Source of the DNA: Podarcis liolepis
Taxonomy: Eukaryota
DNA: 64,000 bases
Assembly (NCBI GenBank): GCA_965112155.1
Contig: OZ218098.1
Reading direction: 5' to 3' (one strand)
Part shown: positions 20,247-64,000 of the stretch, in pieces
How positions within the stretch are numbered: position 1 is the stretch's first letter
Layout of the letters: every line of letters begins with the position of its first letter
Translations under genes and position numbers: made by a program
The notes under the pieces: generated by a model
Databases searched by the model: none
Seen by the model: the letters and a program-made list of their open reading frames with translations, nothing else
Told to the model about the DNA's origin: nothing

Positions 20247-20354
20247 TATGTTCAGGACTGATTTATTATTTGTTTATGAACAAGTACATCAATGTTGGCT
20301 TACATTATTCTACCTTCACAGTGATCATTTTTTCCGATTAATTATGCATTTCAG

Positions 20355-20557
20355 GAAACAAGACAACGAGAGCATTAGAGTGAGTACTCTTTGTCACAAT
20401 CCACAGCTTCCCGTGGAAAATGTCATGGTTCCCAAGTATAACACATCCCAGTGTGTTATGGTCCGTCAGCACAATGAGGAGGGGATATTTTACATTTGTG
20501 GCTGTGTGAATGAACAGGAATGCAATGACAAACTCATTTTTGAAAAGCACACCAGTG
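20355..20557 (+). CDS. TGFBR2L: TGFBR2-like exon 3 (ectodomain C-half)
   Basis: ttcag acceptor; LCHNPQLP...CVM...YICGCVNEQECNDKLIF (Cys box CxCxxxxxCND); G|gtgagt donor. Confidence 0.93.
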
Positions 20558-20973
20558 GTGAGTATTCTTCCTGGTTTGAGTCCACCTTTCCCCATTTTAG
20601 AGGAGATTATTTTTATTGAGACTGTTGGCATTGGCAGACTTTGGGCTTTAAAATTTCAGTGGCACTCTCACCTTCTGTTGTTTGTCATTGTTGCGATGCC
20701 CCCGGTGTTGCACCCAGTGTAGGCAAACTGACTCTGCTCCCCTAAATCCGCCTCTGCCATTGGGGTGCGTGTGTTAAATCCTTTCTCCCCCACCTTCATT
20801 CCCAATCATTCTTGCCCCTGCTGCAATTGGGGTGAAAGGGGGGAGGAGAGGACTGATATAAAGGCAATGTTATTTGGGTTGAAATGATTGAGTCAATTCA
20901 TAGAGAGGAGAAAAAAATGACTCAAGCACAATGTAGAAAATGGCTAGACTGAACAATCTAACCTGGCGGATTA

Positions 20974-21217
20974 CAGTGGTACCTTGGTAGTTGAACGGCT
21001 TGGCTCCCAAACAAATCAGCACCTGAACGCTACAAACCCGGAAGTGGGTGTTCCTGTTTGCGAACGTTTTTCGGAAGCCAGACGTCCAACACAACTTCCG
21101 CAGCTTCCGATTGAGTGCAGGAAGCTCCTGCAGCCTAACAGAAGCCACACCTTGGTTTTTGCACCATTTTGGGAGTCGAACGGATTCTCTTGAATTTTGA
21201 GAACCAAGGTACCACTG
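20974..21217. mobile_element. Tc1/mariner-type MITE (family B)
   Basis: TA-flanked, TIR CAGTGGTACCTTGGT / ACCAAGGTACCACTG, different interior from family A. Confidence 0.82.
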
Positions 21218-22988
21218 TAGTAACACAGTTGGCCATTTCCACCTGGGGAAATGATGCGGCTATTCAACTGAATTTTAAGAAGCTTGACTTTCTGAGCTCT
21301 GAAGGGGTGGGGAGGGAAGCTGGACAGAACATGAGAGGGGGATGTTTTGTTCACAACATTATACATTCCCCAGAAAAAGTGAGAGAATGCAGTGTAAATA
21401 TTCCACAGTAAATGCTCAGTGTGAAAGTGGCCTATGTTGCAAGGCAGGGACGGAGTTCTGCCTAAGGTCTTGTTGACTGTCAAAGTAGATCAGTTACAGT
21501 AACTGACCATGAAAGTAGACCAGTAGTAGCCAACAAGGTGACCTCTAGATGCTGCTAGACGTGTGGGCCTTAGCCAGCGCAGCTGATGGCTAGGGAAGAT
21601 GGGAATTGCAGTCCAATAACATTGGAAGGGCAGCATACTGGCGACCCATGGTGGATTGATGGTTTGACTCCATAGGCATATGTTCAAGCCAGTATTATTT
21701 TAGACTTGTAAGCTAAGCCATCGCTTTCAGTGTTGACCTTATCAGATGTTAGTTTTGCGAGGAATGGGATCTGTTTCCTGCTTATACAGTCTAAAAACAG
21801 AGATGGCCCAACCACAGCTCCCCCCCCCTCCCAAACATTCCATTGAAAGTTTGCCTGTCAGGCAAAAACATAAAACACCAGGCTGGGTCATGTGTGGGAA
21901 GGAACAAAATGTAGCGGGGAGATGCCTCTCCCCATCCCTCCTGCCCTAATTGTGGGTCTGCTTAGTTTGGACCAAACTGTGGTAAAGTTTGATGCAGTTT
22001 TTGAGCTGTGAAACTGAAACTTGAGTTTATACAATGTGATCTCCTGTGCAATGATTACGTAGCCTGCTTTAGGAAGAAAATCGCCCCTTAAGTCACATTA
22101 TCAGCTTCAGAATCTATAGCTGAATTATAAATGGTGCTCCAGAAAATTCCGCAGGCATGATGGGCAGACTATTTATTTTAATGCAACATTTAATGCAAAT
22201 ATTTATTTATATGTCATGTGATATTACATATAAAAATCAAGGTTAGAACTGTTGTATCTTAATTGCATGGAAAAACAAGTAAAAAAGCATCAGAAGTGAC
22301 AACAAACCGTATTTGGAAGCAAGAGAGCAGTAGAATCTCAGTTGAACATGTAGGAACTTAGCATTCTGTGGTTGCTGTCATTGCACGCAGTTGATACTGT
22401 TCGCTGTGGTCTGGCTTACACCATAACACTAAGCCAGACCATAGCTAAGTGTGAATGTGCAAGTGTTCAGGTAGCAACAGAAAAAATCACAGCCACTTCA
22501 CTGTTCCCTCAGTCCTCCTGCAGCCATGCTACCTTGAGTTAAGCAATGGTTTGACATGTTAAATCTGTCCAGGGAGAGAAACTTGAGCATGGGTTTGGAC
22601 ATAACATTAAGCGAAATCATACCTTACTTTACAGCAGGAGGACTGGAGTGAAACAGACTTGATTTTTACTGTAAAAACACACACTTATTGAGGCTTAGCC
22701 ATGGTTTGGGCTTAACATTATGTGCACACAGGGCCAGTGACTGTTCTCTCAGCAAGGAATATATGAGCAACCACTTTCTTTTTTCAACACAGACCAAGTC
22801 CACATAACATAAAACAGAACTGTTTGACAGGAAAAGCATAATAACAACATGTGGCCATTAAATGAATTATCATTTTAGTTATCAGTAAGTTACACTGTTG
22901 ATTATGATCACATCTTATGGCAGCCAGTGCCAAGGTCAAATGGACAGTGCAGTGGCGGCGACAAAAATCATTGCTTTTCATTATAGAC

Positions 22989-23309
22989 CAGGGGTAGGCA
23001 ACCTAAGGCCCATGGGCCAGATGTGGCCCAGTCACCTTCTCAATCCGGCCCATGGGCAGTCCAGGAATCAGCGTGTTTTTTACATGAGTAGAATGTGTCC
23101 TTTTACTTAAAATGTATATCTGGGTTATTTGTGGGGCCTGCCTAGTGTTTTCACTTGAGTAGAATGTGTGCTTTTATTTAAAATGCATCTCTAGGTTATT
23201 TGTGGGGCATAGGAATTTGTTCATTCCCCCCCCCCCATATAGTCCGGCCCACCACATGGTCTGAGGGACGGTGGACCGGCCCACAGCTGAAAAAGTTTGC
23301 TGACCCCTG
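22989..23309. mobile_element. hAT non-autonomous element
   Basis: TIR CAGGGGT...ACCCCTG, perfect 8-bp TSD TTATAGAC. Confidence 0.88.
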
Positions 23310-23316
23310 TTATAGA

Positions 23317-23491
23317 CAGTGCATTTTTCCTGGAGAGGACGCAGGGGTACACATACCCCTAAACATTTTGTGAATCTTTGTACTTTTGTCCATTTACTGT
23401 ATTTCTTTTTCCCGATTTGAACTATAAAATGGTGGTTTTCTTGAGTCAAAATGAGAGTACCCCTAAAAAAAAATTAAGAAAAAAAGCACTG
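23317..23491. mobile_element. hAT-like MITE (older; its left TSD was hit by the 22989 element)
   Basis: TIR CAGTGC.TTTTT / AAAAAAGCACTG; TSD ATTATAGA at 22980 and 23492. Confidence 0.78.
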
Positions 23492-26400
23492 ATTATAGAT
23501 ATACTGTGTGTGAAGTTTTATACCTCGGGCCCTTTAGAGTTAGCAGTATGCAAAGAAACTCATATTCTCTTGGCTTCCTTGGATCATTTAAAGCAGTAGC
23601 ACATTATTGTTTGGTGTTCAGAAAGTAGCATACCGTATTCATTATATGCCATTTATCCTCCTACACCCTTTTGAGAGCAGACAAGGACCATAGGAAGGTG
23701 GCCAAGGCTATATTATAACTCTAAATCTACCTAATAGAGATTATATTGCTCGATTCAGAATATATCCATTGAGGAATATTTAGATGCCCTCAGCATTTCT
23801 TGTTTCATTTGACCGTGAGGTGGGTTTTTTTCTTTCTTCTAGAACCAATTCATTTCTGGCAGAGAAAGCAGTGGGAGGCACAGAGAAATATGAGGCGATG
23901 GTTTTCCTTTTCTTTACATTTCAGCATTTGTTTTCATAGAAAACAACTGCTTGCCTGATAATTCTTCAGGCTCATTTAATGATCCCTGCTACAAGCTGAT
24001 GACTTTGCAGCCCGGGAGGCAACATACTTATGCAGCTGATGGGAATTATGTACACAGTTATTACTTCAGGGTTTGCACATAAGAGAAGTCCTGGAAAATC
24101 CTCTGAAAACCATTCTGCTTTCCATTGGATTTCACAGCCTTTAGCGATGTAGTCATACCCATCAGGTAAATCCATTAGAGAAGCAGGAGATAGCCAGGCT
24201 TCGCGCTTTCCAAAACAAACTCAAATTATATCATTTGAGGTTGATCCTGTGGTTTGAACTCAATGCCTATTTTAGAAACATTCACAGCTTAGCAGAAGTT
24301 AGCTGTGGCAGATTTTTATTTTTTTGTAAACTGCCAAGTAAAACAGCCAAGTGCTTTGAGTTTCTTTTTCCAGTATCTGAACTGTAGGCTGCACCCACTG
24401 AGGTCATGCAGCAAAGGCTTTTTGCTTAGGGGATGGCTCTTGAACTTCTCTTCCTCACTATTATACTTGGCCAAGAATCCTTTCAAAGATTTTATTTGAA
24501 TTTCATGAGCAGCAGTGAGGAACTGCTCCTATCTCTTTGCAACGGGGAGAAGAGATCGTATCTCATATCTTGCCTGTATTGAAAACAACTCCCCTGGCTC
24601 CCAGCAGTTTCCAAGTTCAGTTGAAAGTGCCAGTATTAACTCTTAAAGCCACACGGTTTATCTTCCTAATACCTGATGGGCCATCTTCTCCCATATCAAT
24701 CTGCCCATCCACTGAGGTCACTGCCTGAGGCCTTCCTTAAGCTGGTCCCACCATCTGAAGTGTTGGTGGGCAGTGACCAAAAAGAGCCTTTTTAATGTAG
24801 GTCCTCAGCTTTGGGGTGCCAGCCTTCCTACTTAGACCCAGTTAGCACCCTTATTACTCTCATTTGGCTGCCAGGCAAAATCATTTATGGTTTCAGACTT
24901 TAAAGAACCTTTAGCATCAATGGTAGCTTTCTTTTTTGTAAACTTAAAATAGTTTCCATTTTTACTAGCTATCTGAATGAACTGTTCCCATTTTAGTTCA
25001 TTGAGTTAGTTTGTATGCTTTCTTTTATGAGTTTCATTTTTTAAAAAACGACAACACTTTTAACCATGTGTACAAATGCATGCACATGGACCTTACTTAC
25101 GGTTTATTCAAGGATGCAGTCAGTGAGTATCCCTTAGGTGGATCTCAACATGCAGAAACGTTGCAATGTAAACTCAGCAGTAAAGCTTGTTTCATTGCAA
25201 ATACTCCCAGCTAATGGGGCAGCAGCAGGTTCACATTACAACCAGCAGGTGGCAGCAAAGGGGCTGCAGCATCTGCGAATCAGAGGCGCAAGTACTGTAA
25301 GGCGCTATAGTTGCAAGTGCGGTTTACAAACATCCCCATCCTAGTAGTGATTTCACCCACTAGTAACTGCAGAACAGGATCTTTCCCACAAAGATTAGCC
25401 AGCCTGTTCTTGAAGCGTTCGGCATGGTTATAATCCAGCTCTTACAAGACCTGGCCTAATAGCAATCAATCTGCTCCGTAATCTTCACTTCACAAGGAAA
25501 GATAGTGGTGCCCAGTCTTGGTCTCTTTCCTGACCAGAGCTGCAATTCCAGGGCCACTCGGCTGCAGTGTGAAACAGGTTCTTACTTACTGAGTGTGGCT
25601 GGGGAGGAGAGTGAGCATCTATGGCAGCTCCACCCAGCAGGCTTCTTTCACAGTGATGCATTTTGTGCTTCTTATGAGTGCATTAACAGTACCCACCACT
25701 GGGTGCTTTCTGTTTTTCCCCCTACAGAGATTTACCTGTTTAGGTGCCTCTGGGAAATTAAGAGGTCTCAGCAGCACTGCACCTAGCTGCCCCATGATAA
25801 AATTAAAAAATCTGTGAGTTAAAAGGGTGGGGGAGGGAAGGGTGGGGGGTGGAAGGAGTATTGGGAGTCAGACCCTCTGGACCACGCTCCCACACTGCCG
25901 CTGGACGGACTGCTTTTACTTAGCATTCCTTCCTTAGATTAATCTGATCATTGATAGCAGGGCCATTTATATTTTCAAAAGACCTGGAGCAAAGGAGTTA
26001 CCAGCATTTTCCACCCTTGGCCTCTTGGGTTTATGATCTAAGAGCTGAGTTTTTGTAAAGACTGTTCATTTTAGTCGGCAAGATTTGGCTCTGTCATCTT
26101 GCGTGCACATGAAGCTGCTTATACCGTCGTCAGATCTACAGTACATATATACTAATTAACAGCACATCTCAAAAGTCTCTGGCATGTGCTTTACCCAATG
26201 AGTTGGGGCTTTTTCCCAGATCAGATCTCCTGACTATGTCTGAGAACAAAACAACTAACTTACCAAATTGTAAATTGTGGGGGAAATTTGCCTGTTTCCT
26301 AAATGCATGGTAAAGTGCTGCAATACAGACGACTGCGGCTGACTTGGTTGTAATCTTTGAGTGGCTGCTGCTCTGCCGACAGTTGCTGAGAATAAAACGA

Positions 26401-26536
26401 AAAGCAGAGAGGGACCTGATACACCATCTTGAGCTCCTAGGAGGAAAGGTGGGATATACATGTAATAATAAACAAATAATAAATTAACATTTGCCACGTG
26501 TTAAACTGCATGGCTATTTTTTCCAAAATCGCACTA

Positions 26537-26767
26537 CAGTGGTACCTGAGGTTAAGTACTTAATTCGTTCCGGAGGTCCGTTCTTAACCTGAAACTGTTC
26601 TTAACCTGAAGCACCACTTTAGCTAATGGGGCCTCCTGCTGCCGCCGCACGATTTCTGTTCTCATCCTGAAACAAAGTTCTTAACCCGAGGTAACATTTC
26701 TGGGTTAGCGGAGTCTGTAACCTGAAGCGTATGTAACCTGAAGCATATGTAACCCGAGGTACCACTG
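26537..26767 (-). mobile_element. Tc1/mariner-type MITE (family A)
   Basis: TA-flanked, CAGTGGTACCT TIRs, reverse complement of 1970-2184. Confidence 0.85.
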
Positions 26768-27124
26768 TATATATTAAAGAAAACAGACAACCAAGCAAAC
26801 CCATGGTAGAAAATGTTAGCACTTGAAATGTTGAGCCCTAGGATACAGGAGAAGGTACGGAGGAAGCTGCCTTATTCTGAGTCAGACCACTGGTCCAACT
26901 TACCTGAGTATTGTCTGCACTGAGTGGCAGCAGCTCTCCAGGGTTTTTAGACAGGGAACATTTCCAGCTCTACCTGGAGTAGTTGGGGGTTGCGCTGTGA
27001 TTCTTCCCCACAAGTTATTAGTTTTATGTTCATTCTTCACTAAGAAAAGCTGTTCATGTTGACTAACTGGCCTATGCGGAGATGTTCTTGCTGTGTATTA
27101 ATTTTTGCTTTCCTTTTGCCATAG

Positions 27125-27936
27125 GATACTCCATGCTACAAAGCAAAGAAATAATTCCCGTGGCAGCCATCAGCCTGCTGCCCCCACTGCTGGTTGCCAT
27201 CATGATAACGGTGACGTTCTATCTCTGCCGAACCCACAGGCAGAGGAGGAGAGCCAAGGAGTGGCCCCAGAAACAAGTCCAGCACCGCCCACTGCCTGAA
27301 TCCAGCAGAGCCACCAGCTACGACGAGATACTATCTGTCAAGATCGACCACCGCGTCACCTTGAGCACAGCCTGTGCCAACAACATCAACCACAACACCG
27401 AACTGTTGCCTATCGAGCTAGATGAGCGAGTCGGGAAAGGGCAGTTTGCAGAAGTCTGGAGAGCAAAGTTGAAGCATGCCTCTTCGGAGCAGTACGAGAC
27501 GGTGGCAGTGAAGATTTTCCCCTGCGAGGACTATGCTTCCTGGAAAAACGAAAGCCAGATCTTCAGCGATGCCAATCTCAAGCATGACAGCATCCTTCAG
27601 TTCCTCACAGCGGAAGAGAGGCACTCTGGACTCCAGAAAGAATACTGGCTCATCACGGCCTACCACAGCCAGGGAAACCTCAAGGATTATTTGTCCAGGA
27701 ATGTTCTGAGCTGGAGGGACTTGCAGAAGATGGCTGGCTCCCTAGTGAGTGGTGTGGCTCACTTGCACAGTGACTACACTCCCTGTGGCAGTCCAAAGAT
27801 CCCCATCGCCCACCGGGACATCAAAAGCACCAACATCCTCATTAAGAACGAACAGGAATGTGTGCTCTGTGATTTTGGGATTGCTCTGAGGCTGGATCCA
27901 GCCTTAAGTGTGGAAGATTTTGCAAACAGCGGACAG
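27125..27936 (+). CDS. TGFBR2L: TGFBR2-like exon 4 (TM, juxtamembrane, kinase subdomains I-VII)
   Basis: Lies within ORF 27082..27954; catag acceptor; [21 protein letters not shown]; kinase motifs; CAG|gtgagt donor. Confidence 0.96.
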
Positions 27937-29059
27937 GTGAGTGCTGTAGAATGAAACCAGCAGAGCAATCCATTCTGCTTGATGGAAAGTAGAAAGATCT
28001 TAGCCTCCTTCATGTGCTAGCCATGCAAAGAGTTCTGCGCACTGTGGGGGCTGTGCCACTGGCCCCACCCCAAAACATCATTTGATTTACCAATCCCAGC
28101 TTCCATGTGTTGAGCATGGACATTTGCATAGCGGAAGCCTGCCTTATATAGGTTTTCCATGTGATCTAGAACCCTGTGTGAATGGGGATCCAGGTCACAT
28201 GAAAGCCTGCTGCATCTGTAGAGCATGACACTCATAAGCTTCCCCTGGACAGCCAGTTCAGCATGTAAATCTTGGGGGTGGGGCCAGAAGTGCTGCCTGC
28301 TGCCCTTTCCATGGATGGAGGGCCCTTCTACGTGTGAAGGGGGTCCTTCAGAATGGCAAATATAACCCATAGCAGGCAGTATGAAAAAGCTCTGAAAAGG
28401 CAACGCTGCTATGGAATTTGCTGCAGGCATTCGGCATCTTCCATATACAAACATGCAACTATGATTTAAGTGAGTGCCCTGCTTGTTGGTACACAATTGG
28501 CTTGGAATCACCTTTGATGCTGAATGACAAATAGCTACTGTGTTCCGGGTTCTGGAGGGTATCTTGTTTTTGGCAGCTAGCTTGTAATCAAAGTCCGGGG
28601 CTACTAGATCTTCCCAAGCTCTTTTTGCATTCAAAATCTAACACCACTGAAATACTCAATGTCTTTCCCCTCATGGTGAAGCGGCAGGCAGAGGAGTGAT
28701 TTGAGCAGAAAGCTGCCCACTGACAGTAGAGTGGTACTTTCCTCCATTCAAACTCACAGCTGCCCACAGCACATTTTGGTTTGAATGAGACAAACAGAAA
28801 ACCCAGGAAAGAAGCTCTCAATTATTGTCACATCTAATTTGGGCCTTGGTTCCCATCCCAGTAAGGGCTGGTAAGTTTAGAGAAGATTTTACGGTCACTT
28901 TCCTGGCTACCCTATACTTGGACAAAAACCTAGAGATAAAGGGGTGGAGCAACTCTGGAGTACAAAAGGTCCAGTCTGTATCGCAGATCTTCTTTTAACT
29001 TGGAATCACCACGGCTTCTCTCCTCCACCCCTTCTAACATCTACTCAATTTATGGCCAG

Positions 29060-29201
29060 GTGGGCACTGCCAGATATATGGCTCCTGAAGTTTTGGAATC
29101 TCGAGTGAATCTCGAAGACCTGGAGTCCTTCAAACAAATGGATGTTTATTCCATGGCTCTGGTTTTATGGGAGATTGCCTCCAGGTGTGACGCCATAGGA
29201 G
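29060..29201 (+). CDS. TGFBR2L: TGFBR2-like exon 5 (kinase VIII-IX)
   Basis: [43 protein letters not shown]; cag acceptor and G|gtaagt donor; 142 nt. Confidence 0.96.
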
Positions 29202-30067
29202 GTAAGTCTATACCAGCAGAGCCCCGCTTTACAGGTCTACTGGGCAAAACAAATATGGCTGTTCCAACAAGAAGTTGCCAGAGGGAGGTGGGAGCAAACC
29301 TTAGTGCAGAGAAGCTAACCTATGGCCACCCCACCCTAGATGTTGATGAACTAAAACTCCCAGTATCTCTATGACTGCCAGTCATGTAGGCAGAGGCTGA
29401 TGAAAGCTGTAGTTCAGCAAACATCTGGAGGGCCACAGGTTAGCCATTCCTGCCTTAGCAGAAGGACGCATTTGTCAGATAGGAGGGCATCTCTTGCAAA
29501 AATGGGTCTCAGTTAGCAAGGCCAAGAAAGGCTTCTGGCCTCAGGACTCAAAAAGCCGCACTGCCCATAGCCAAGGCAAATAATCCTAGGATAGATGGGC
29601 AAATGACCTATCTCAACAGCATGGAGATTTGTGTGGCTCCAGTGGAGATTGTATTGCCTCTCCACTAGGAAATGATAGTGACGCCTCTTTTAACATAATA
29701 AAATGGTACAAAGAGCCTGCTAAAATGAAAGAAAATACCAAGAAGATTGAAGGAAGCATTTGGAGTGCGAATGGCCACTAAAGGAACCCACGTTTCATCA
29801 GCAGTAAAAAAAAATCATTAACGGGGATTAATTTATTGCTTTAGCATTTCCCGCTACACAATCAGGCTTTGAACTGGTAGAAGCAATGCTAACCTTTCCT
29901 GCTAATTCAAAGTGATTTGGGCTTGTGCTGATTCTAATTCTCATGAGATGCAAGTCCAGACACTAACATGTGGAACAGTCTACAAGGGCGGTGTATGTGA
30001 AATCTATGGGCAAATGTGTTAGCAGGATGGTGGGGATACAGCACTGGTGCAATATGGATTCTGGTTC

Positions 30068-30272
30068 ATTTATCTGTCATTACATTTATATCCCACCTTT
30101 TCTCCAAGGAACTCAAGGTGGCATGCAAAGTTTCCCCCCTTTCCACTTTTATCCTCAAAACAAACCTCAGGTTAGGCTGAGAGACAGTGAGTGGCCCAAG
30201 GTCACCCTGTGAGCTTCATGCCTGAGTGGGGACTGGACTCCTGGTCTCCCAGGTCCACCACCCTAACCACTG
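30068..30272 (-). mobile_element. tRNA/L2-tailed squamate SINE
   Basis: Reverse-complement homolog of 6350-6540. Confidence 0.6.
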
Positions 30273-30761
30273 CAACAAGCAACAAATACTTAGCGGCCTC
30301 TGCTGTGTCCTACAACGTGGTCCATTAAGGAAGTACCTGCTGTACATCCACACACACACACACCCTGCAACTCCACATCTCAAACACAACCCGGTTGGGC
30401 TGTAGGTGCTACTACTTTTAACAGTTCACAGGTTTTAAAACAAACTGTGGGCATCAACCAGCCAATACCGTGCTGCCAATACTAAATGAAGCAAGCTTCT
30501 TTTCTGAAACATACAGTGGCATTTCGACAAATCTTTCAATGTGCTGCCTGAATTTAAAAGTGTCCCCTGTTCACAACCTGGCTGCCAAGCTTTGTTATCA
30601 ATGAACAGTTCTTCACCAGGTACAGCTGCAAGCCGCCACTAGAGGTAGTTTTATTATCCATTTCCTGGTGAATGTTCTCGGTGGCACCACAGCAAGTACA
30701 TAGTCAAGGTGTATCTAAATTGCATGCACATCTAGCTAACATCAACGCTGCTTCCTTGCAG

Positions 30762-30889
30762 AGGTGAAGAACTATGAGCTACCATTTGGATCAAAGGTCC
30801 GGGAGCAACCCTGCATGGAGGTTATGAGAGATGTTGTACTGCATGGCCGAGGGCGTCCAGAGATACCTGGCAATTGGCTGGTGCATCAG
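30762..30889 (+). CDS. TGFBR2L: TGFBR2-like exon 6 (kinase X); GC donor
   Basis: [43 protein letters not shown]; ttgcag acceptor; ends CAG|GCAAGT; 128 nt. Confidence 0.93.
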
Positions 30890-31295
30890 GCAAGTACCAA
30901 AAAAGGAAGGTAAAATTTATGGCTTTGCCACGAGAACACCTTCTTTTGCCTACTCCTCCTCTTGAACTGTTTACATTCAAGCTTATAACTGAGAACTGGT
31001 GCCCGAGTTTGTTTTCTTCTTCCCTCCTCATCCGTTTTGGCTTCTTTTCTTTTTAGATCGTAAGCCTGAGGGCAGGGGCAGTCTTATTTGTTATTGATCT
31101 CATGTTATTGATCTCTGGAAGCCTTTTCCTCTGAAGAGCAGTGCAAAAATGCTTTAAATAAATATTTCTGAGCAGCAGACCTAGAGGTGCGTGTCTAGAC
31201 AAACAACATTTGCAGAAATCTTGAAGCCCCCCCCCCCAAACACTGTCCCCCTCCCCAGGTTTCTGAGGCAAAATGGAGACTTTGGGGGAAATTGA

Positions 31296-31353
31296 AATTA
31301 ACATACTTACTTTCTTATCAAACCAATTAACATACTTACTTTCTTATCAAACC
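31296..31353. repeat. Perfect 29-bp tandem duplication
   Basis: AATTAACATACTTACTTTCTTATCAAACC x2. Confidence 0.9.
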
Positions 31354-32396
31354 TAATATGTTTTAACATAAAATGCATCCTAACTTGACATAGTACAATT
31401 TTATATTTGGCATATTTCTGAAATGCAGAGAGTTGGCCTCTGTATGTTTACTCATAACTAATACTGATTCTGTTTGGTGGCACTCTCAAAGTACCTATGA
31501 TTACAGTCTCAGAAGAATAAATGCTTTATGTTTTGTACAAGCACCGTTGCAAATGCACCCAGTATCAAAGAGCACAAGCTGTCAACTGCTACCGTATGCT
31601 GCCTTGTACATTTTCTCATCTTAGTTTTTTTGCAATTTGAAGAGGAAAAAATAAAAGCTAAAAGAAGAAATCAATAACTTTGTATTAAACAAAGTGAAGT
31701 GTGCTTGGTGGACAAAAATGGCCTCATATAGTCACAGTCCTCTCATGAACAGTCCTCTTCTCCTCTTAAGGCGTTGTCCTGAGAGATGGGTCCCCCGCCC
31801 CCACTTTCCATTATAACACTGCCCAAGACCCTTCCAGTCAATTTTTAGTTGCCCCAGCAAAGATGGCGCTGGCTCTGGCAGGACTTGCACATAAGCTAAC
31901 TGGACAAATGAGGCAGGACAGAACCTTCTGTTTCCCCTGCCTGGTCAGCTCTATTGGGCTAGTAAAGCAGATCATCTGCTTCATCTGTTTGACTGGCTTC
32001 CCATACTGGCTGTGGAGGAAGTGTCTTCACTAATCACCAATACGTGCCTGAAAGAAATCAAGATTTATTGCAGCTTTCCCAGTAAATCATCAAAATATTT
32101 ATGTGGGCAATAGCATCAAGCAGAGTTTATTTTTTGGGAGGTGAATGGAATACGGTGTCCTTCAATAGGGAAAAGGAAATCAAGCACAAGGTCAAAAATC
32201 ATGTTCCTGAGCCAGTAACGCACACTGATTGCTCTTCTTTTTACTTCAAAAGTGGGCAATAATTGTAGTGAAGCAGAAGGAAGAGCACGGAGGAAAGTAT
32301 CAAAAATACAACGCATGTCCTTATTTTGATGCCCTGTTCGTTTCGTTCCCCCTAGATTTGAGATTGCTAACTTCCCAGCTTCCTTCTTAATTTCAG

Positions 32397-32630
32397 GGAA
32401 TGCATTTCCTGTGTGACACCATCACAGAATGCTGGGACCATGATCCTGAAGCCAGACTCACGGCTCACTGCGTGGCAGAGCGGTTCAACCTGATGGTGCA
32501 GACGGATTGCGATGACATCCTCAACAACAACAACAGCAGCAGCAGCCACGGCAGCAGCCTTGGTGATGAGGCAAGCAAAATGGGTTGCCCAATAGATGAG
32601 AATCAAGGGAGTGACAGGAATATCCAATGA
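32397..32630 (+). CDS. TGFBR2L: TGFBR2-like exon 7 (kinase XI and C-terminal tail, stop)
   Basis: tttcag acceptor; [30 protein letters not shown]...NIQ*; AATAAA downstream at about 32642 and 32726. Confidence 0.95.
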
Positions 32631-36158: not shown

Positions 36159-38232
36159 CAGGCTTTTATGAAAACCTACGAGATGGCGGTGAAGGCTGCA
36201 AAGAAGTCATATTTCTCGGCCTCCATTGCATCCGCTAGCTCTCGCCCAGCGCAATTATTTAGTATAATCAGGTCTTTAACGTCCCTTGAGGGACAGCCAA
36301 ATTTAAATAGCAAATTGACACACGGCTGTGAGGCATTTGCGAGCTTTTTTGCGGAGAAGGTCTTGTCGCTCCGCCATGACCTCCCTGCCAATTTGGATAC
36401 AATAAAGGAACTGGAGGCCCCTCGACTGTCCTCGGGTCCAGTATTGGACCACTTCGACCAGATATCCCCAGCCGATGTGGACAGACTCCTCCGAGCTGGA
36501 AAGCCCACCACCTGTCCTCTCGACCCGTGCCCGTCTTGGCTGATTAGAGCGTGTCCAGACGAGGTGCGGGCCCTCCTGGGGGATATCATCAATTTGTCCC
36601 TTGGCACGGGGACATTCCCAGGGGAACTGAAGGAGGCAGTGGTGCGCCCGCTCTTAAAGAAAACATCATTAGATCCTTTAGATCTATCCAATTACCGCCC
36701 GGTTTCGAATCTTCCGTTCCTGGGTAAGGTGATTGAGAGAGCGGTTGCTGAACAGCTTGGTGGGTTTCTGGATGAAACATCGGCTCTGGATCCATTCCAG
36801 TCCGGCTTCCGCGCTGGTCATGGGACCGAGACGGCTCTGGTCGCCCTAACAGATGACCTTCGTAGACAGCTGGATCGAGGCGGGTCGGGGCTGCTGATTC
36901 TTCTAGATCTATCAGCAGCTTTCGACGTGGTCGATCACGAACTTCTGGACCACCGCCTTGCCGACGTGGGGATCCAGGGCACAGTCCTTCAATGGCTGCG
37001 CTCGTTTCTCTCTGGTCGGGGACAGAGGGTGGCGCTTGGGGGGGAATTGTCATCGCGCCACTCCTTGGTGTGTGGAGTACCTCAGGGTGCGATACTCTCC
37101 CCGATGCTTTTCAACATCTTTATGCGCCCCCTCGCCCAGCTTGTTCGGAGTTTTGGGCTGGGTTGTCATCAGTATGCCGATGACACCCAACTCTATCTGT
37201 TGATGGATGGCCATCCTGACTCGGCCCCAGACACACTGACCAGATGTTTGGAAGCTGTGGCTGGATGGTTACGTGGGAGCCGGTTGAAGCTAAATCCTTC
37301 GAAGACAGAGGTCCTGTGGCTGGGACGGGGCGATATGGGATTGGGGGGGCAACTCCCATCTCTTGCGGGGGCGCAATTAGTGCCAGCACCGTCCGTTAAG
37401 AGTTTGGGTGTAATCTTCGACACCTCCCTTTCCATGGAGGCGCAGATTGCAGCTATAACAAAGGCGGCATTTTTCCATCTCCGCCAAGCTAAGCAGTTGG
37501 CTCCTTACCTCTCTCGCCCTGACCTAGCCACTGTGATCCATGCGACGGTCACCTCCAGACTGGATTATTGTAACTCGCTCTACGTGGGGCTGCCCTTGAG
37601 ACTGACCCAGAAACTCCAGCGGGTGCAGAATGCTGCAGCGAGACTCCTTACGAGGTCTTCGCTGCGAGATCACATTCACCCGGTGCTATACCAGCTGCAC
37701 TGGCTCCCGGTGGAGTACAGGATCAGGTTTAAGGTGCTGGTTTTAACCTTTAAAGCCCTATATGGCCTAGGACCCTCGTACCTACGGGACCGCCTCTCCT
37801 GGTATGCCCCACAGAGAAACCTACGGTCTTCAAATAAAAACATCTTGAAGGTCCCAGGCCACAGAGAAGTTAGGCTGGCCTCAACTAGAGCCAGGGCTTT
37901 TTCGGCTGTGGCTCCGATCTGGTGGAACACTCTGTCACAAGAGACCAGGGCCCTGCGGGACTTGACATCCTTCCGCAGGGCCTGCAAGACAGAGCTGTTC
38001 CACCAGGCCTTTGGCTAGGGCACAGCCTGACTCCCTCCCTCGGCAATCTTCGCAGAGCTCTGGCCCAATGGTTGCTAGTGGCTTGAATTAATTAATTTTT
38101 ATAATGAATGATTTTAGAATGTTGTTTATGTTGTACTTTTGTACTGTTTTATTGTTGTTAGCCGCCCTGAGCCCGGCTTCGGCTGGGGAGGGCGGGATAT
38201 AAATAAAATTTATTATTTATTATTATTATTAT
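36159..38232 (+). mobile_element. Young 5'-truncated L2-clade LINE in OSBPL11 last intron (antisense to the host gene)
   Basis: Uninterrupted RT ORF, CpG-rich sequence, 3' UTR with a terminal stem-loop and a (TAT)n tail. Confidence 0.93.
36168..38018 (+). CDS. L2 LINE ORF2 fragment: reverse transcriptase domain and C-terminal region (616 aa, endonuclease absent)
   Basis: NYRPVSNLPFLGKVIE, QSGFR, LLDLSAAFD, GVPQGAILSP, YADD, LKLNPSKTE, LHWLPV motifs. Confidence 0.9.
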   Translation: MKTYEMAVKAAKKSYFSASIASASSRPAQLFSIIRSLTSLEGQPNLNSKLTHGCEAFASFFAEKVLSLRHDLPANLDTIKELEAPRLSSGPVLDHFDQISPADVDRLLRAGKPTTCPLDPCPSWLIRACPDEVRALLGDIINLSLGTGTFPGELKEAVVRPLLKKTSLDPLDLSNYRPVSNLPFLGKVIERAVAEQLGGFLDETSALDPFQSGFRAGHGTETALVALTDDLRRQLDRGGSGLLILLDLSAAFDVVDHELLDHRLADVGIQGTVLQWLRSFLSGRGQRVALGGELSSRHSLVCGVPQGAILSPMLFNIFMRPLAQLVRSFGLGCHQYADDTQLYLLMDGHPDSAPDTLTRCLEAVAGWLRGSRLKLNPSKTEVLWLGRGDMGLGGQLPSLAGAQLVPAPSVKSLGVIFDTSLSMEAQIAAITKAAFFHLRQAKQLAPYLSRPDLATVIHATVTSRLDYCNSLYVGLPLRLTQKLQRVQNAAARLLTRSSLRDHIHPVLYQLHWLPVEYRIRFKVLVLTFKALYGLGPSYLRDRLSWYAPQRNLRSSNKNILKVPGHREVRLASTRARAFSAVAPIWWNTLSQETRALRDLTSFRRACKTELFHQAFG

Positions 38233-38931
38233 GTTCTTCTAGGGAGCTGCCTTACACTATGCCAGACTATTGATCCATCTAGCTCAATATTGCCCACATT
38301 GTTTGGCAGTGACTCTGCAAGGTTTCAGAGAAGAACATTCCCAGTCCTACTTGGAGAAGCCAAGGATTGAATTTAGGCCCTTCTCCATACAAGTCAGATG
38401 CTCCAAGGCTAAACTACAGATGAACTGAGTCAGTGTGAAGTCTGGCCCTTACAAGACAAGAAAGCCTAATTTTGGACTTCCTCCCTGGGCGCTAGAGATT
38501 CTTCACCATAGTAGCTAATAGTTCACTAGGAGATCCCTTGTTCAGATCTCAGCTACAGACTCAGGGAGTGGCTTCAGACAAGTCACAATATCTTATGCTT
38601 GCAAGATAAGGATAAGAATGCTAACCTACTAGACAGGATTGTTGCAAATGTGACTTATTAATATGAAGCCAAATCTACAGTTCAGTTCCAAAAAGAAGCA
38701 TATACATTGAGCATGTAGAGAAACTGAAGTGAAGGCATTAATCTATCAAATAAAGTGGCAAGAAAAATGTTCCAGCAGAGGCTATTTATATTCACCTATC
38801 TTCTGTTTCCAAAAAAAATGCAAAGAACTAAGTAGAGGAATTTTTTTTATATTTATAGAGGCAAGCAGTAGCCCCTATGACATGCTGGAAGGTTGGCATT
38901 TTAAATATTCGACTTGTGTTGAGTTACTTAC

Positions 38932-39085
38932 ATCTTTGACGAAGTACTTAGTTTGCCACGGTTCTCCTGTCTCAGCCCGAAGTCGTTCTTCATTTCTCTG
39001 CCGTTCCTCAAGTGCTTTCTTATGCTCTGTCGCCTTATCAATGTCCCCGTCCCTCAGAGACTCTGTCACATGTTGCCACAGCTTC
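38932..39085 (-). CDS. OSBPL11: OSBPL11 exon 12
   Basis: [51 protein letters not shown]; cag/gtaagt. Confidence 0.95.
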
Positions 39086-43199: not shown

Positions 43200-44450
43200 C
43201 TGATGGGTAGTAGTACATTTTTGTTGTTGGGCTGTTATTTATATCATGGGCTTGTGAAGAGCCGAACATGGTTAGGGAGAGAAATGGCTATGGGAGACAA
43301 GTTATCACAGAAGTCGAGGGAGAGGCTATTTACACCTTGATTCTTGCTCCCACCTCTCCCATGGCTGGGTTCCTGGTGGTTCATCTGCTGTGGCCATCAG
43401 CCTGTCCATGGTGCCTATGAGACCTGGGTGGGCAAGCTGGGAGTTGATCTGACTCAGCTCTGTCCACCTGACTACAGCATCAGCACAAGCTACAGAGATA
43501 GGGTGGCAATGAAGTGGATGTGGCTCATAGTACCGGTACTTCCATCTACATCACCAGAAAAAAAACCCTGTCTTGGAGCTGGTTGTTAGGGCCGGTACCT
43601 GTTGTTGGGCCAAGAAGACAGTCAACAAGGGTCACTGCTGGTTTACCATCTAATCTGCTGCTAACCAGCTTATCTGACCAAGCTGATGGGCATGGTGATG
43701 GAGGAACCCCTAACAATAGCCCTGGATGATGTCAACATCCATGCAGAGGATGCCTCAGGTGTTCCTTTTCAGGACTTCATGGCCTCCATGACAGCCATGG
43801 GGCTGTCCCAAGTTATCAGTGACCCAACACACTGGCCAGGGCACACCCTCAATCTGGTCTTTGCTCCAGATGGAGGAAGGGGTTGACTGGAAGTAGCAGG
43901 GGGCTCATGGTCAAACCACTTTCTGGTGAAGTATGGTCTAATGGCTTTGATCCACCCCTGGAGGGGTGGGGTACTGAATTGGATGGCCCACTCTCACCAC
44001 TGGAGATTAATGGAATCCAATGGGTGCCTAAATGCCCTGGGCCTTTTTCCCAGTGAGTAGAGCAGACAATCTGATTGAAACTTAGTTGCGCTGTTGAACA
44101 GTGAAGCACAATGAGCTCTTGAAATGGCCATCCCTGAGCATCTCTGGCACCATGAAGCCCTGCCTTCACAGGTTAGATCAGTGTTTCCCAACCAGGCGCC
44201 ATATGGCCCCTGGTGGCCCCCAGGATATTCCAGGGGGCCAAAGGTCAAAATCTCGTAAATGGGGGGCCACAGCACACAACTGCCCCCCCCCGGCTACGTC
44301 CATGGGCAGGCCACAGGAAGGAAACAAGGTCAGAAGGGAGCCACGGTTAGAAAAAGATTGGAAAACATTGGGTTAGCTGACAAGTAAAGCACAAGTGGTG
44401 AAACACACACTGTAAAACCGACCAAACATGAGTGAGCCGATGTGGCAAGT
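43200..44450 (+). mobile_element. Degenerate L2 ORF2 5' (endonuclease) remnant
   Basis: DDVNIH...MGLSQVISDPTHWPGHTLNLVF resembles APE-type endonuclease motifs GDFNIH and PTH..GHTLDL. Confidence 0.6.
44179..44370. mobile_element. hAT MITE with the same TIR type as the 61934 element
   Basis: CAGTGTTTCCCAACC left end, degenerate right end, TSD GGTTAGAT/GGTTAGCT. Confidence 0.78.
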
Positions 44451-55111: not shown

Positions 55112-56509
55112 CTGGATTAAAAAAAAAAAAAAATCAGAAGGAAAAGGAAGTTCAGAGGCAGACAAGGCAAGAATGCAATTATTTATTTCAAGTTAAGTTT
55201 TGTTTAGGGAACATCCCAGCAATGCAGAAGGAAGGAGAGGGTGTGCAAAATGTGGCATAGATACAACCTGTGGCACCTCTTGCTTTGGGTTACTGGGTCT
55301 TATCCTGAGGCATATCATAACTCTAACCTCCCACTGCAATGGTTCTGTGGTCGATGTAGTATTGGTTGTCCACAGTACGCTTTTAGGTGATGCCAGGGCC
55401 ACAGTAAAAATAGAGGAAAATGTTTTCTACAGCAAACAATGACAAATGTTGAACTAAAACTACTCTTCCTGCACTCTGAGGAAGCTATACTGAAAAAGGC
55501 GGGTGCACATGTCAAAAAGGAGCGCTAAGCCCTGGTGGGCTGCCCCTTATCCCCTTGTTACTGACGGACAGTCAGCCAATCAGGATTTTTCTTCTTCACT
55601 TCTCACTTCCCTCTGTGATCCCTGGCCTCTTGTTGTGGCCCCCCATTTATGCATTTTTCACCTGGGCCCCCCTTAGAATATCCTGGTGGGCCCCGGTTGG
55701 GAAACACTGTTCTAACACACCCACACCTTTTCACAATCCACTGATTGGGCTGGGACAAATATGGGAATCAGATAAGTGCAACTGTAAGATATACTAAGTG
55801 TTGCAAGTATTCACTATGAGTCAGAAGGAACATTACAGTCTGGACTACAACAGAAAGCTCCTCTTCAATGAAATGTGGCATTTGTCTGAACGCCTGTATA
55901 AAAGGGTAAAGACCTATCAGCCCTCATTCTTCAGCAGTCACATTTTGCAGCTATGCATTTTAGTAAAAATTGACAGCACATTGATTGGTTACATCTCTTG
56001 TTTTGACTAAAAGCACCACTCTCCCCAAACGATGCATATAGAAAAAATGTGACTGTTTTATGCCAACTATCAAAGTGGAATGGTTAACATGATTTCAATT
56101 GTTTAAAATATATATTTTTAAAAAACTTGAATAAATCTCAAGAACACACGGTAATTAAAATGCAAAGTTTTGTATATACCTAGAATATGCATATAAATAT
56201 TTTACCACATGGAGACGTTATATTCACCAACATTTGTGTTATAGTCATTATTCCTAAATTAGAGGATTTCATTTATCTTTAGTATTTCTCTTGTCTACTA
56301 TGCATTTTTTATGTAAAAAGAAAGTGCTTTATACCTCTAGCAGTTTAATTTGTAAAAAAAAAAAATGTTCAAATTCAGACACAGTAATTTTTCAGAATGC
56401 ACAAAATAGCAAGCAGACATTGACTTGAAGAAGACAGCTACCCAAAGACAAGAAAAAAAGAGGAAAGGCTTCCTCCTAGTGGGGAAGTCCAAGAACTACG
56501 GAGTCTTAC

Positions 56510-58783: not shown

Positions 58784-60687
58784 TACCTTTATTAAGAGCA
58801 GGACACAGAAAGTATGATCATTCTCCTTATATGGTTTTTTATAGTACTGACAATGGCATCCTCTTGGCTTACTCTGTGAAATGAGTACAGGAGGGACTGC
58901 ACTGTATTATCTCCAATACACATCTGCAGGGTCCAGAGAGCAGGTTTAAGACCCTCTGCCCAATATTTTTATTTAGCCAGAAAGGAACATTTAAGAATGC
59001 CACATGATGTTTGCCTTGCTTCCAAAAGATAGAAGTCCTTTAAACTGTCTGTGCATAGGTTGTGGAACTCCTTCCCTATTACTATTAAGCAATAACAATT
59101 GGTGCTTTGTTTCAGATTCCTGCTTAAGACTCTTCTGTTTGCACAGGCCTTTTCTGATGTATGGCTCAGTCACTGGTTATTGTGCATTGCAGCCAATATA
59201 TTTGCTAAGTACTTTATAGGGGGAGGGAAACACAGCAGCAATTTAGGGTAGAATCATCTAGATTAGGGAACAGGGCTTAGGGACTCCTCCCCAGCACTGA
59301 TGCTCTGACCAAATTCAGAGTTCTATGCCTGTGTTTAAAAAAACGGTTTGCTGCTGTTTCTTAAAAAAGATTGGTAGATCCAGTCACATATCATGCATGG
59401 CTTGGTCCTAAGGGTATACATACTTCTGTTGCTGTACTTGTAAATTATGTGTACATCATTTTTAAAACTTGCTAAGTTGTCCTAGACATCAGGGCTGGGG
59501 AAGTGGGATAATTTTTTGTGAAGGACTTTTGTGGCACTCTGATGGCTCACCCCCCCAAAGAACACTAATGATAATTATATACTACCATTTCCGTTATTAA
59601 AAGATGAAATTGTGCTACTGCTGCTTCATCACCGCCTGTTTATAGGACAATAAAAATGCAATGGTTTCCTATGGGGTTAGTTTAATCACTATGTAGTACC
59701 AATAACAAAATGTGTATTTGGGAAACCTCAGTGCAACGAAACCTAGTTGTTGACACATTGAGAGTTCAAGTTCAAACTGCACAGGCAATAAAGATGGGAG
59801 AAGCAAATTGACACAGCAGATATTTAGAGGAAATTGTGAAATGCTGTTCCCTTAGCTCAAAACACACAATGCAACACAACTAAGGCATTAGGAGAGAAAA
59901 GGAAGGTGAAGTGCTTGGTTCACTTTTTAATTCTTCCCCTTAACCAGCTCTAAAGTCCAAGTGAATTTAACAGGCTTTTAGAATATACTGATGTGATTAA
60001 CCTGAACCAAAACATAGTGGATACTTCAGAGAGCCGGGGGGGGGGGCGGGGAAAATAAGGAGGGGCATACCCAAATCTGTCAAATCTAAATAACATTGAG
60101 CTTTCGGGGTAGAAGGAAAGACTGCAGGGGTTGGGAGCAACAGCAAAATTTGAATTCCTCAAAGCCTCTTTAGATTTGTGAAAAACAAGCATTTCAAACC
60201 TTTTTCAAATGTCCCCAAATACTAGGTATGCTAAATATTCTCCAAGAAGTATCTCAGAATACCATCAGTAATATTCAACAGGGATGCAGTATTTTCTCTT
60301 GTAAACACTATGCTTTTCAAATGTACTGTACAATATAACATTTGAAAGCAAAGCATGCCTCATTATTTGCACTTTACTCCCAAATATTAACTGTGCTCTG
60401 GGTTTTTCGAATGTGTTTCATAGCAGAGTTTTCCCTCAGAAACACACAAAACCTACTAGTCGAATGAGGGCATTTACAGCTCAGGCAATCAATGCCTGGC
60501 ACAAAAATAAGAGATTACTGATGCAACACTTCTGCCTTTATCTGTAGTTTGCTTATCCTTTTCTAAAACAGAACAAAAGCAGCCCTTGACTATTTCCAGC
60601 ATTTTAAAACAAATCCCTGCCTACTGATTAAGACAACTTCATTTTATCATTAGGTAATACAGTGAATTTTTAAGAAACCGTACTTAC

Positions 60688-60756
60688 CGGTACTGCCAGC
60701 CTGTGACAAGATTTGTGTATTTCATTAAATAGCCCGATATATTTTCCATGTGGTCA
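60688..60756 (-). CDS. OSBPL11: OSBPL11 exon 2 (PH domain start)
   Basis: DHMENISGYLMKYTNLVTGWQYR; cag acceptor, gtaagt donor; 69 nt, phase 2-2. Confidence 0.93.
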
Positions 60757-61509
60757 CTGTGACAAATATAAGAACAAAGTCCATCAGAAAAAGAGTAATA
60801 ATGACAATGAAAACATTTCACGTAGAAGTTCTGCAATTTCATATTTGCAGCCTAAACCTTCTTCCAATAACTTTATTTTTAGAAGCTGACTCTAAGTCAG
60901 CATTAATGTCAAATGACTCTGAAACAGAGACTGCTGCAAGTGCTTGGTCTTCTCCTTGTCTTTGCAGTGTGGATTCAGAACTGAGACGCTTTACACCTAC
61001 TACGCAGATTAAGGGGAGCCAATTCCAGCATTACTGACACAGAAACCACTTTGAATCTGCATTAAAATTACGCGGCACCTCTCATTTATAAAGCTTCAAC
61101 ATTAAGATTAAATTACTCAACACACTTAAGGTTTCTAATTTCCCCCAAGATTACGTCTGGGCTCTTGGACAACTTTTCACTATGAAAATTGTTCTTAACT
61201 AAGGCTAAAAAGAACAGGCTTAACAGAATGGAGTTAAGCAAATCCATCACTGGGCACTAGTAATTAAGGAAAGAGTTGTGTTCATTTCCAAACACACTGT
61301 TCTTGGAACCTCTAAGTGCACATTATAAATTATAACCCTCATTGGAAAATGGAATATTTGGTGCAATTCCAAAAATCTAAAAGAAAGCTCTGAAACCCTG
61401 CCATGGTTCAGAAGATCATAGGCTTGTTTACATGTTGCACTGAACACAGATGCAAGCAATCTTTACATACATGCAAGTGTTTGTGCAAGCATGTGCACTT
61501 CCTAATTGA

Positions 61510-61859
61510 TAAAGGTAAAGGTAAAGGGACCCCTGACCATTAGGTCCAGTCGTGACCGACTCTGGGGTTACGGCGCTCATCTCGCTTTATTGGCCGAGGG
61601 AGCCGGCGTACAGCTTCTGGGTCATGTGGCCAGCATGACTAAGCTGCTTCTGGCAAACCAGAGCAGCGCACGGAAACACCATTTACCTTCCCGCCGGAGC
61701 GGTAAATATTTATCTACTTGCACTTTGAGGTGCTTTCAAATTGCTATGTTGGCAGGAGCAGGGACCGAGCAACGGGAGCTCACCCCGTAGCGAGGATTCG
61801 AACCGCCAACCTTCTGATCGGCAAGTCCTAGGCTCTGTGGTTTAACCCACAGCGCCACC
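61510..61859 (-). mobile_element. Sauria SINE
   Basis: (AAAGGT)n tail on the + strand, B-box GGTTCGAATCC on the - strand; homologous to 19821-20185. Confidence 0.88.
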
Positions 61860-61933
61860 TATACAGCTCAGCTAATCTGTATAGGCTGTACACTCATTAA
61901 ATGTTATATGTGAAGGTCTGTAGAAGTGTACAT

Positions 61934-63355
61934 CAGTGTTTCCCAACCTTTTTTGGGCAAAGGCACACTTGTTTCATGAAAAAAATCTCGAGGCACACCA
62001 CCATTACAGCCCCGTGACGTCAGCGCGCAGCGTCACGCCGGGAGGGACATGAATTGCTAGCAAATTACATAATCACCTCCTTGAGGGCTGGCTCATCTTC
62101 TCCGAAGGCAGAACCCCATTAATTAACAGCACAGACTCACACCATAGCCAAGACGAGGGGGGAAAACCTCAGTCATGCACAGTCATGCACATGTGGGGGC
62201 TAAATGAGGACGAAGACCGGGCAGAGAGCAGGGTTCAAATCACCCACCTGGCCAGGACAATCCCTGGGTGCTCCCTTGGGCCACTCGCCTGACCCACCTC
62301 GCAGGGCTGTTGTTGCGAGGATAACACGGGGAGAACCACGCGCGCCCCCGGGAGCTCCTTGGAGGAAAAAGCGGGCGATGAATGCAATGCACGAAATATA
62401 TGAGAGGCGACCAGGTTTTGCAGGTGAGGGGCCCCCGCCAGCCTCCGCTTCCAACACCCGGCGCAACGACACCGAAGTTTCCCCCCGGGCTCGGCTCGGG
62501 GAGCAGCGCTGCTCCCCCCCCCGGCTCCCCTTCGCCCTCCCGGCTCTCTCTGCCGCCCACTGGGGACCCCCCTCACCTGCCAAGTCCGGAGCGCCGGTGG
62601 AAGTTGCATGCATGCATGAAGGGCGCCGCGTTGCCATTGCATTGCACTGCACTCCATGCAACGCCTGCACGCAGGCATTGCCTTGCACGCCCGCCAAGGG
62701 GTCTCCCCGCAGTCCGATGCGTCCCCTCCGGCGCGGATGCAGCATTGCAAAAATAACCCCCCCCCGACGCAGCCCTACCTGGGGGGCAGCCTCCGCCGCT
62801 CCGCCTCCGCGGGGATCCCCGGGCTCCATCCTGCCACCCGATCTCCGCGGGGGCGCAGGCAGGCTGCGCGGGGTCTGCGCGGAAGAGCCCCTGCCCGCCC
62901 GGCCGCTGCCGCTGCGCTCATTCCATGGCCGGGAGAAGAGCGCTTCAAACGAAACGCCCGGCCCGCCAGGCCACGCTTGGAAACGTAGTTCGCGCACCCC
63001 GCGCGGGCGCGGAGCCCAAGGGCGAGGGGACTACGGATCCCGGCAGCCCCCGTGCCGGGGACGGAGGGGGAGAGGCCGGGTGCAGGGATGGAGGGACGGG
63101 TGGGCGAGCGAGTGAGTGAGTGGCAGCCGCCAAGCCTTTCCCGAGAGCCGGGAAGGGCCTCCCCGGAGGAGGAGGAGGAGGGAGGCGCAGAGCGGGAGGG
63201 AGGGAGGGAACCCCAGGGGTCATCTAGTGACGGCGCCCCAATCAAAAATTTGACTTAAAAAAAAATCTTTCGAATTTTTTAATTTTTCCCGCGGCACACC
63301 AGGCAACATCTCGCGGCACACTAGTGTGCCACGGAACAGTGGTTGGGAAACACTG
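61934..63355. mobile_element. Non-autonomous hAT (Charlie-like) element carrying about 1.2 kb of captured CpG-island cargo (Pack-hAT)
   Basis: Perfect 15-bp TIRs CAGTGTTTCCCAACC (61934-61948) and GGTTGGGAAACACTG (63341-63355); identical 8-bp TSD GTGTACAT (61926-61933, 63356-63363); subterminal GGCACAC motifs in both arms; no transposase. Confidence 0.88.
62200..63225. promoter_or_regulatory. CpG island / promoter-like segment (cargo of the hAT element)
   Basis: Very GC- and CpG-rich compared with the rest of the window; GC boxes, two ACTAC-n-TCCC-like motifs, Kozak ATG and splice donor. Confidence 0.75.
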
Positions 63356-63679
63356 GTGTACATATCAACTCTTTGTGTATACAGATCATACACTTGTTGA
63401 ATGTAACATCTGAACACCCTTCATATCTTAGCTTAATAAAGTAAGTTCACTAGGTGCAAATAGTAAACAGCTGCTACCTCTGTCTCTGTCTCTGTCTCTC
63501 TCACACACCTCTCCCTCCCTCTCTCTGCCTAAGTGCATTTCTCCCTCATACAAACCACACATTCAAATATACCTCCCCGCTCAGACACTACACACATATA
63601 TATCCATCTCTGTGCCCAACTGTGTAATTCTTAAAACACACAGTCCTTTCATGGGGTGAAGCAAGTGCCTTCTGTAAGC

Positions 63680-63733
63680 CACCCAGAGTGGCTGGGAAAA
63701 CCCACCCAGAGTGGCTGGGAAAACCCACCCAGA
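63680..63733. repeat. 23-bp tandem duplication within an L2-type 3' end
   Basis: CCACCCAGAGTGGCTGGGAAAAC x2 plus a partial copy, followed by an AT-rich tail. Confidence 0.8.
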
Positions 63734-64000
63734 TGGGCAGGGTATACCGGTAAATAATAATATCATTATTATTGAAATTATTATTTTTATTCTGCCAGTT
63801 CCAGGTAGGCAACAAAGAAGCAAAGAGGATGGGCCACTAGGCAAGCAAGGAAGTCATTCCTACCATTTCTCCCCCCTCCACAATCCTTGCAGACCAACCA
63901 AATCCAAGGCAGCAGGCCCTCCCAGCTCAACCCTGCCCCCTGCCCCCAAATATTGAGGGTTACCAAGCTGGCAGTCGTAGGCGCCATGGTGTCTGGAAGA

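Follow-up and report, generated by a model that had tools for sequence, protein, structure and literature searches.

A probable young copy of an abundant non-autonomous hAT family with a CpG-rich interior in an OSBPL11 intron of Podarcis liolepis

The 64,000-nucleotide stretch of Podarcis liolepis DNA analysed here (contig OZ218098.1 of assembly GCA_965112155.1), referred to as the window, contains a transposable element of approximately 1.42 kb within an intron of OSBPL11. This element is very probably one young copy of an abundant non-autonomous hAT family, and its GC- and CpG-rich interior is in all likelihood the common body of that large, young family rather than a promoter and exon captured on one occasion. 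A transposase of hAT type, supplied in trans from outside the element, would recognise the 15-bp ends together with GGCACAC subterminal repeats, excise the element and insert it at a new location with duplication of an 8-bp target. At OSBPL11 this target would have been GTGTACAT, in the intron upstream of exon 2. The interior, including a SINE-derived piece and an ATG...GT string that resembles an exon, would be the ordinary family body present in thousands of copies and would not have been acquired by the window copy from another gene. At the family level, a young and still-mobile DNA transposon appears to have provided a vertebrate genome with thousands of CpG-island-like sequences, and the family can serve as a natural test of the methylation, decay or co-option of such sequences.

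Structure and classification of the element

Both boundaries of the element are exact, as the original prediction had claimed. The left target-site duplication (TSD) GTGTACAT at 61926-61933, with TA at its positions 4-5, is identical in 8 of 8 bp to the right TSD at 63356-63363. The 15-bp terminal inverted repeat (TIR) CAGTGTTTCCCAACC, which starts with CAGTG, occupies 61934-61948 on the plus strand and 63341-63355 on the minus strand, and all 15 positions are complementary. By our own calculation, a 15-bp inverted repeat combined with an 8-bp direct repeat inside 3 kb is expected by chance approximately 3e-6 times per 64 kb. The element is 1422 bp long. Subterminal GGCACAC repeats had been described for both arms, and the motif is strongly enriched there: it has 10 matches in the window, five of them in two ~70-bp subterminal arms. 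The left arm (61949-62045, plus strand) carries GGCACAC at 61962-61968 and 61992-61998 and TGACGTCA at 62015-62022; the right arm (63231-63340, plus strand) carries it at 63293-63299 and 63315-63321 and in inverted form at 63324-63330. At position 63331 the window copy has A where most copies have G (GCCGCGG).

Between the arms lies the GC- and CpG-rich core (62046-63230), the supposed cargo, which is family-wide and has no Pfam or Rfam match. It includes a SINE-derived segment (62215-62395, plus strand) with a B-box-like GGTTCAAATC at 62232-62241; this is the “old SINE” of the original prediction, which we take to be a squamate tRNA-type SINE. The reported absence of a transposase agrees with a Pfam search of the six long ORFs of the element, none of which contains a domain, and an Rfam search of the element at a permissive E-value returned nothing relevant. 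The element is without coding capacity.

Transposons of the hAT superfamily have the terminal motif YARNG, short TIRs of about 10-25 bp and an 8-bp TSD, and they are moved by a transposase with BED, RNase-H-like and hAT dimerisation domains. The 8-bp TSD and the 15-bp TIR opening with CAGTG, which fits YARNG, agree with this definition, and together with the subterminal repeats and the lack of a transposase they bear out the assignment to non-autonomous hAT elements. Transposition itself is documented by an empty site in a related organism, by family-level depth with many variant contigs and by ORF variants of other copies, all described below. Within the superfamily, SPIN-type elements of tetrapods offer a Buster-group non-autonomous comparison. 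The Ac-type TSD consensus is nTnnnnAn, which GTGTACAT fits as well as it fits the Buster-type consensus. The latter is nnnTAnnn (PMC3517528), and TA stands at positions 4-5 in all three TSDs found next to the CAGTGTTTCCCAACC end, three sites only: GTGTACAT itself, GGTTAGAT at 44171 of the window and CTCTAGAA in a metagenome contig (L002). With three TSDs and no transposase seen, a Buster-group affiliation is suggestive but thin. The element shares with Buster-group MITEs, such as the Mar MITEs of Drosophila, short TIRs starting with CAG, an 8-bp TSD with TA at positions 4-5, short subterminal repeats, a lack of coding capacity, high copy number and recent mobility (PMC3517528). Unlike a typical MITE, it is 1.42 kb long, with a body of 67% GC, near-undecayed CpG and a SINE-derived piece.

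Abundance and composition of the interior

Region 60401-64000 was covered with contigs at 90% likeness from two DNA runs (X1 and X4) and a probable RNA run (X15), and was compared with the raw stranded RNA reads of a further run (X23). Unique flanking sequence has a depth of 52.5 in X1 and 71 in X4, whereas summed contig depth is 0.2-1.5 million in every bin of 61961-63400. In both DNA runs the depth of the core (0.2-1.3 million) is comparable in order of magnitude to that of the arms (~1.3-1.5 million), and the core exceeds the single-copy flanks approximately 10^4-fold. Arm sequence outnumbers core sequence by a factor of 2-6 in X4; in X1 the two are similar. The SINE-derived segment has a depth of 0.2-0.7 million, which is the family level, and the segment thus belongs to the family sequence.

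Nearly all depth carries a letter other than that of the window copy at no fewer than 15 variable sites, each represented by 28-115 distinct contigs (mostly 50-100). The ~10^4-fold depth contrast and the many variant contigs indicate a large repeat family in which one sequence clearly predominates; the window copy deviates from this majority sequence at no fewer than about 1% of positions. Letters private to the window copy include A at 62367, 62471, 62711 and 62836 and T at 62907. Seven of 15 differences are CpGs of the majority sequence that the window copy has lost by transition; such loss is the usual fate of a methylated repeat. The family would comprise roughly 10^3-10^4 copies, an order of magnitude only, since summed contig depth is not equal to copy number. 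A joint from 61956 to 63290 belongs to a short MITE relative of ~96 bp, which is built from the element's own ends alone. Within the window, a BLASTN search with the element gave no second copy of the core, and only the 15-bp end recurs.

Other copies were also recovered at the protein level. A search with the plus-strand ORF at 62204-63112 matched four Logan ORF clusters with 16 distinct variants (P0001-P0016), which sit on ~20 Logan contigs of 0.9-1.4 kb, the longest being 1406 nt compared with 1422 for the element. The same search matched the MIEF2 model of Podarcis muralis (UniRef A0A670JQG5; P0003), whose residues 55-126 are 88% identical over 72 amino acids to the plus-strand translation of ~62624-62839. 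A 66-residue stretch of this model derives from another copy of the family and is annotated as coding sequence, in the direction opposite to that of the proposed exon; it represents either exonisation or an annotation artefact. In the model, the transposon-derived segment (residues 51-126) replaces a poorly conserved linker.

These observations bear directly on the idea that this element transduplicated the promoter and first exon of another gene. Shortly before landing, a single element would have picked up its cargo, and one donor locus and few copies at most would be predicted; the perfect TIRs and TSD and the promoter-like interior suit such an event. However, the whole interior is as abundant as the arms at ~10^4 times single-copy depth, exists in many distinct variants, has further copies on many contigs and within the MIEF2 model of P. 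muralis, and in the window copy departs from the family majority letter at 15 or more sites. We therefore consider a capture by this single element very improbable. An interior that is as abundant as the arms and recurs on many contigs is instead the common body of a large repeat family, as proposed above.

The comparison with known gene-capturing elements leads in the same direction. Pack-MULEs of plants (PMC5861414) and Turmoil-1 of C. elegans (PMC2572040) resemble the element in being TIR-bounded without a transposase and in having a GC-rich interior similar to host gene 5' sequence. Pack elements have an identifiable parental gene and usually a low copy number per capture, whereas the “cargo” here is present in thousands of copies and no parental gene was found for it. 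Neither a protein match to the minus-strand “exon” frame nor a domain pointed to a host donor gene; MIEF2 of P. muralis, the only annotated match, contains an internal copy on the opposite strand and is not a donor. Nor is the supposed captured fragment specific to this element or to a small subfamily, the core depth being close to the arm depth. Literature searches returned no description of the element family or of hAT gene capture in lizards.

The CpG-island-like composition of the core is real. Region 62000-63240 has a GC content of 0.67 and a CpG observed/expected ratio of 0.77 (0.75-0.77 for the core), compared with a ratio of 0.30 window-wide. It had been called the only CpG island in the window, but with CpG-rich sequence defined by GC of at least 0.55 and a ratio of at least 0.6, a LINE ORF region at 36.4-37.8 kb passes too. 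This region falls within an unbroken, CpG-rich reverse-transcriptase-like ORF of 616 amino acids (…YADDTQLY…; 36168-38018, plus strand), which lies inside an OSBPL11 intron and looks like a young LINE copy. Young CpG-rich retroelements such as this LINE ORF (36.2-38.0 kb) and the hAT element are alike in that both are young repeats that pass CpG-island criteria, because methylation-driven CpG decay has yet to act on them. They differ in that the LINE ORF encodes a reverse transcriptase and the hAT element encodes nothing.

The empty site and the OSBPL11 context

A recent insertion had been proposed, together with a search for an empty site bearing a single TSD, and such an unoccupied target is found in X4, a related organism. 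One X4 contig (record 23), 423 nt long and with a depth of 83, matches 63356-63701 from letter 84 onwards, so that its right-hand piece begins exactly at the right TSD. The sole X4 contig over positions 61871 and 61890 also has a depth of 83, with from_end values of 29 and 36 that define a piece of 83 letters at 61843-61925. Because the depth-83 contig carries the variants at 61871 and 61890, the first 83 nt of record 23 correspond to 61843-61925. The contig thus joins 61925 to 63356 with one GTGTACAT, an empty site that we infer by combining two tables; the joint is a reconstruction and is absent among the joints listed (15 of 330). In X1, the contigs of the two flanks stop, without loss of depth, at 61925 and 63359, and they share both flank variants with X4. 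At 61871 and 61890 the window has G and A, and X1 and X4 have A and G in all depth; no other flank difference separates X1 from the window. With A/G at these two positions in both runs, the haplotype with the insertion is seen in neither.

The X4 empty site implies that 8 bp were duplicated upon insertion and that the insertion, missing from a closely related genome, would be recent and either lineage-specific or still polymorphic. It also implies that the CpG island is not the native OSBPL11 promoter. OSBPL11 lies on the minus strand, with exon 2 (xxT-DHMENISGYLMKYTNLVTGWQY-CG) at 60688-60756 and later exons further left, and the element is located in the intron 1,170 bp upstream of exon 2, in the same orientation as the proposed promoter-exon unit. 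If the island were the native promoter and exon 1 with incidental flanking repeats, its position 2 kb upstream of exon 2, its orientation and an in-phase ATG at 62921 would be accounted for. However, none of the block is present in the X4 contig, which has just one TSD; the block is high-copy, and no exon 1-exon 2 joint occurs among the joints listed (15 of 330). This explanation is barely credible, and the reading as a copy of a repeat family is retained.

The letters of the “Kozak ATG exon” of the original prediction are as described, but its use as an exon gained no support. On the minus strand, an ATG at 62829..62827 with A at -3 and G at +4 opens 17 codons (51 nt; 62779-62829) that end in CAG|GTAGGG, the GT being at 62778-62777; no protein match was obtained, and an RNA contig reads across the site unspliced. 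The 51 nt from this ATG to 62779 end in phase 0, and exon 2 opens with T-GAC, so the next codon would be TGA. From an upstream ATG (62919-62921, minus strand), 143 nt lead to 62779 in phase 2, which would read into exon 2 with AG|T as Ser. According to coordinate arithmetic and the ORF list, a phase match with OSBPL11 exon 2 is therefore given only by the ATG at 62921 and not by that at 62829. All three minus-strand frames are open for 156-265 codons, and since the DNA is GC-rich, an open frame in the element means little. A protein search with the minus-strand ORF holding the putative exon (proteins of 146-464 amino acids) gave no match.

RNA evidence agrees with this assessment. A 1026-nt X15 contig covers 62019-63040 unspliced, reads through the putative donor and carries majority family letters. 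No joint from 62779 to 60756 occurs among the joints listed (15 of 330), and the ATG at 62921 is without RNA support. In the OSBPL11 context, RNA cover is limited to the exon 2 bin (30.4 in X15; 3.3 in X23, with the first mate on the plus strand). Each 120-bp bin of the element receives just 5-20 X23 reads, in most bins from both strands; divided among thousands of copies, this leaves a negligible amount of RNA for any one of them. Nearly all of these reads carry the letters of other copies; 2-3 reads carry those of the window copy at 62836 and 62907. A minus-strand bias is present at 63041-63280 (15.8-19.7 vs 0.5 on the other strand); the reads there all share three non-window letters and so derive from another copy. 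The locus itself represents an ordinary intronic transposon insertion with no shown effect on OSBPL11, and may be of use as a presence/absence marker.

Elsewhere in the window, exons of a type II TGF-beta-receptor-like serine/threonine kinase lie at 20248-32630 on the plus strand, with a transmembrane and kinase exon at 27082-27954 followed by exons at 29000-29200 and 32400-32630. This gene and OSBPL11 converge at their 3' ends, the last coding exon of OSBPL11 being located near 38875-39069.

Origin of the core and other elements sharing the end

The origin of the family body is a question separate from the history of the window copy. One explanation is that the CpG-island promoter of a host gene was taken up by an ancestral hAT element, together with the first exon and a SINE-bearing part of an intron, and that the chimera was then amplified to thousands of copies. 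In this case the idea of capture would be right for the family founder and not for the window copy. In its favour, the core is host-like, with CpG-island composition and a degenerate SINE-like piece within the family sequence, other MITEs of the window combine these ends with unrelated bodies, arm sequence is 2-6 times as abundant as core sequence in X4, and the RNA over 63041-63280 is stranded (minus strand, 15.8-19.7 vs 0.5). On the other hand, the searches gave neither a donor gene, nor a protein resembling the minus-strand “exon” frame, nor a Pfam domain. The RNA contig shows no splicing at the putative donor, and an RNA depth of 5-20 reads per bin, with both strands represented in most bins, is low for a family of thousands of copies. 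In DNA of 67% GC, chance alone is expected to produce ATG...GT strings and long open frames. We regard a founder capture as possible but unlikely.

A second explanation, also possible and also unlikely in our view, is that the core is the 5' part of an autonomous hAT element (promoter, leader and first intron) and that the family is an internal-deletion derivative without the transposase gene. Internal deletion is the usual origin of non-autonomous hAT elements, arms and core are similarly abundant in X1, and the core forms one unit that points inward from the right end. However, no frame contains traces of a transposase, whether of a BED or of a hAT dimerisation domain, and an embedded SINE piece would be unusual for a master element. 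Under either explanation, the window copy is no fresh capture.

In its most far-reaching form, the capture explanation holds that the whole family goes back to a hAT element that had acquired a CpG-island promoter, first exon and intron piece from its host, and that it has multiplied to thousands of copies and is still moving. This is doubtful; if true, the transposon is distributing portable CpG-island-like modules by the thousand through a lizard lineage. Genes would then already have taken up some of these modules, as exemplified by the MIEF2 model, the minus-strand RNA at 63041-63280 and the frame-compatible ATG before OSBPL11 exon 2.

The end of the element is found on other sequences as well. 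A complete 192-bp MITE at 44179-44370 (44171-44378 with its TSDs GGTTAGAT/GGTTAGCT) is bounded by CAGTGTTTCCCAACC. A second MITE at 55500-55717 has the right end only, at 55709, followed by TTCTAACA. The body of both MITEs (…GGCCCCCAGGATATTC…) is unrelated to the core of the element. The same 15-bp end on unrelated bodies indicates that it serves several non-autonomous families. In metagenomes, a scan with a 32-nt right-end pattern gave no match, and a scan with a 23-nt end pattern gave only two contigs, arthropod-like, and no lizard copies. These JGI metagenome contigs, L002 (1040-1075) and L001 (the same locus reversed), carry the terminal 23 nt CAGTGTTTCCCAACCACTGTTCC after CTCTAGAA, and look like arthropod host DNA as judged from a LINE-tail ORF and composition. 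This distribution may reflect either conservation of the 23-nt end between very distant hosts or horizontal spread of the family.

Two further repeats of the window can be mentioned. A short inverted-repeat element at 14868-15002 has the ends CAGCCTTTCGCAACC and CAGCGGTTCTCAACC, which presumably resemble SPIN-type hAT ends. Just left of the insertion site, at 61510-61860, lies a tRNA-type SINE with a summed depth of 35-39 million vs 52 for unique sequence, and it is heavily represented in the RNA runs.
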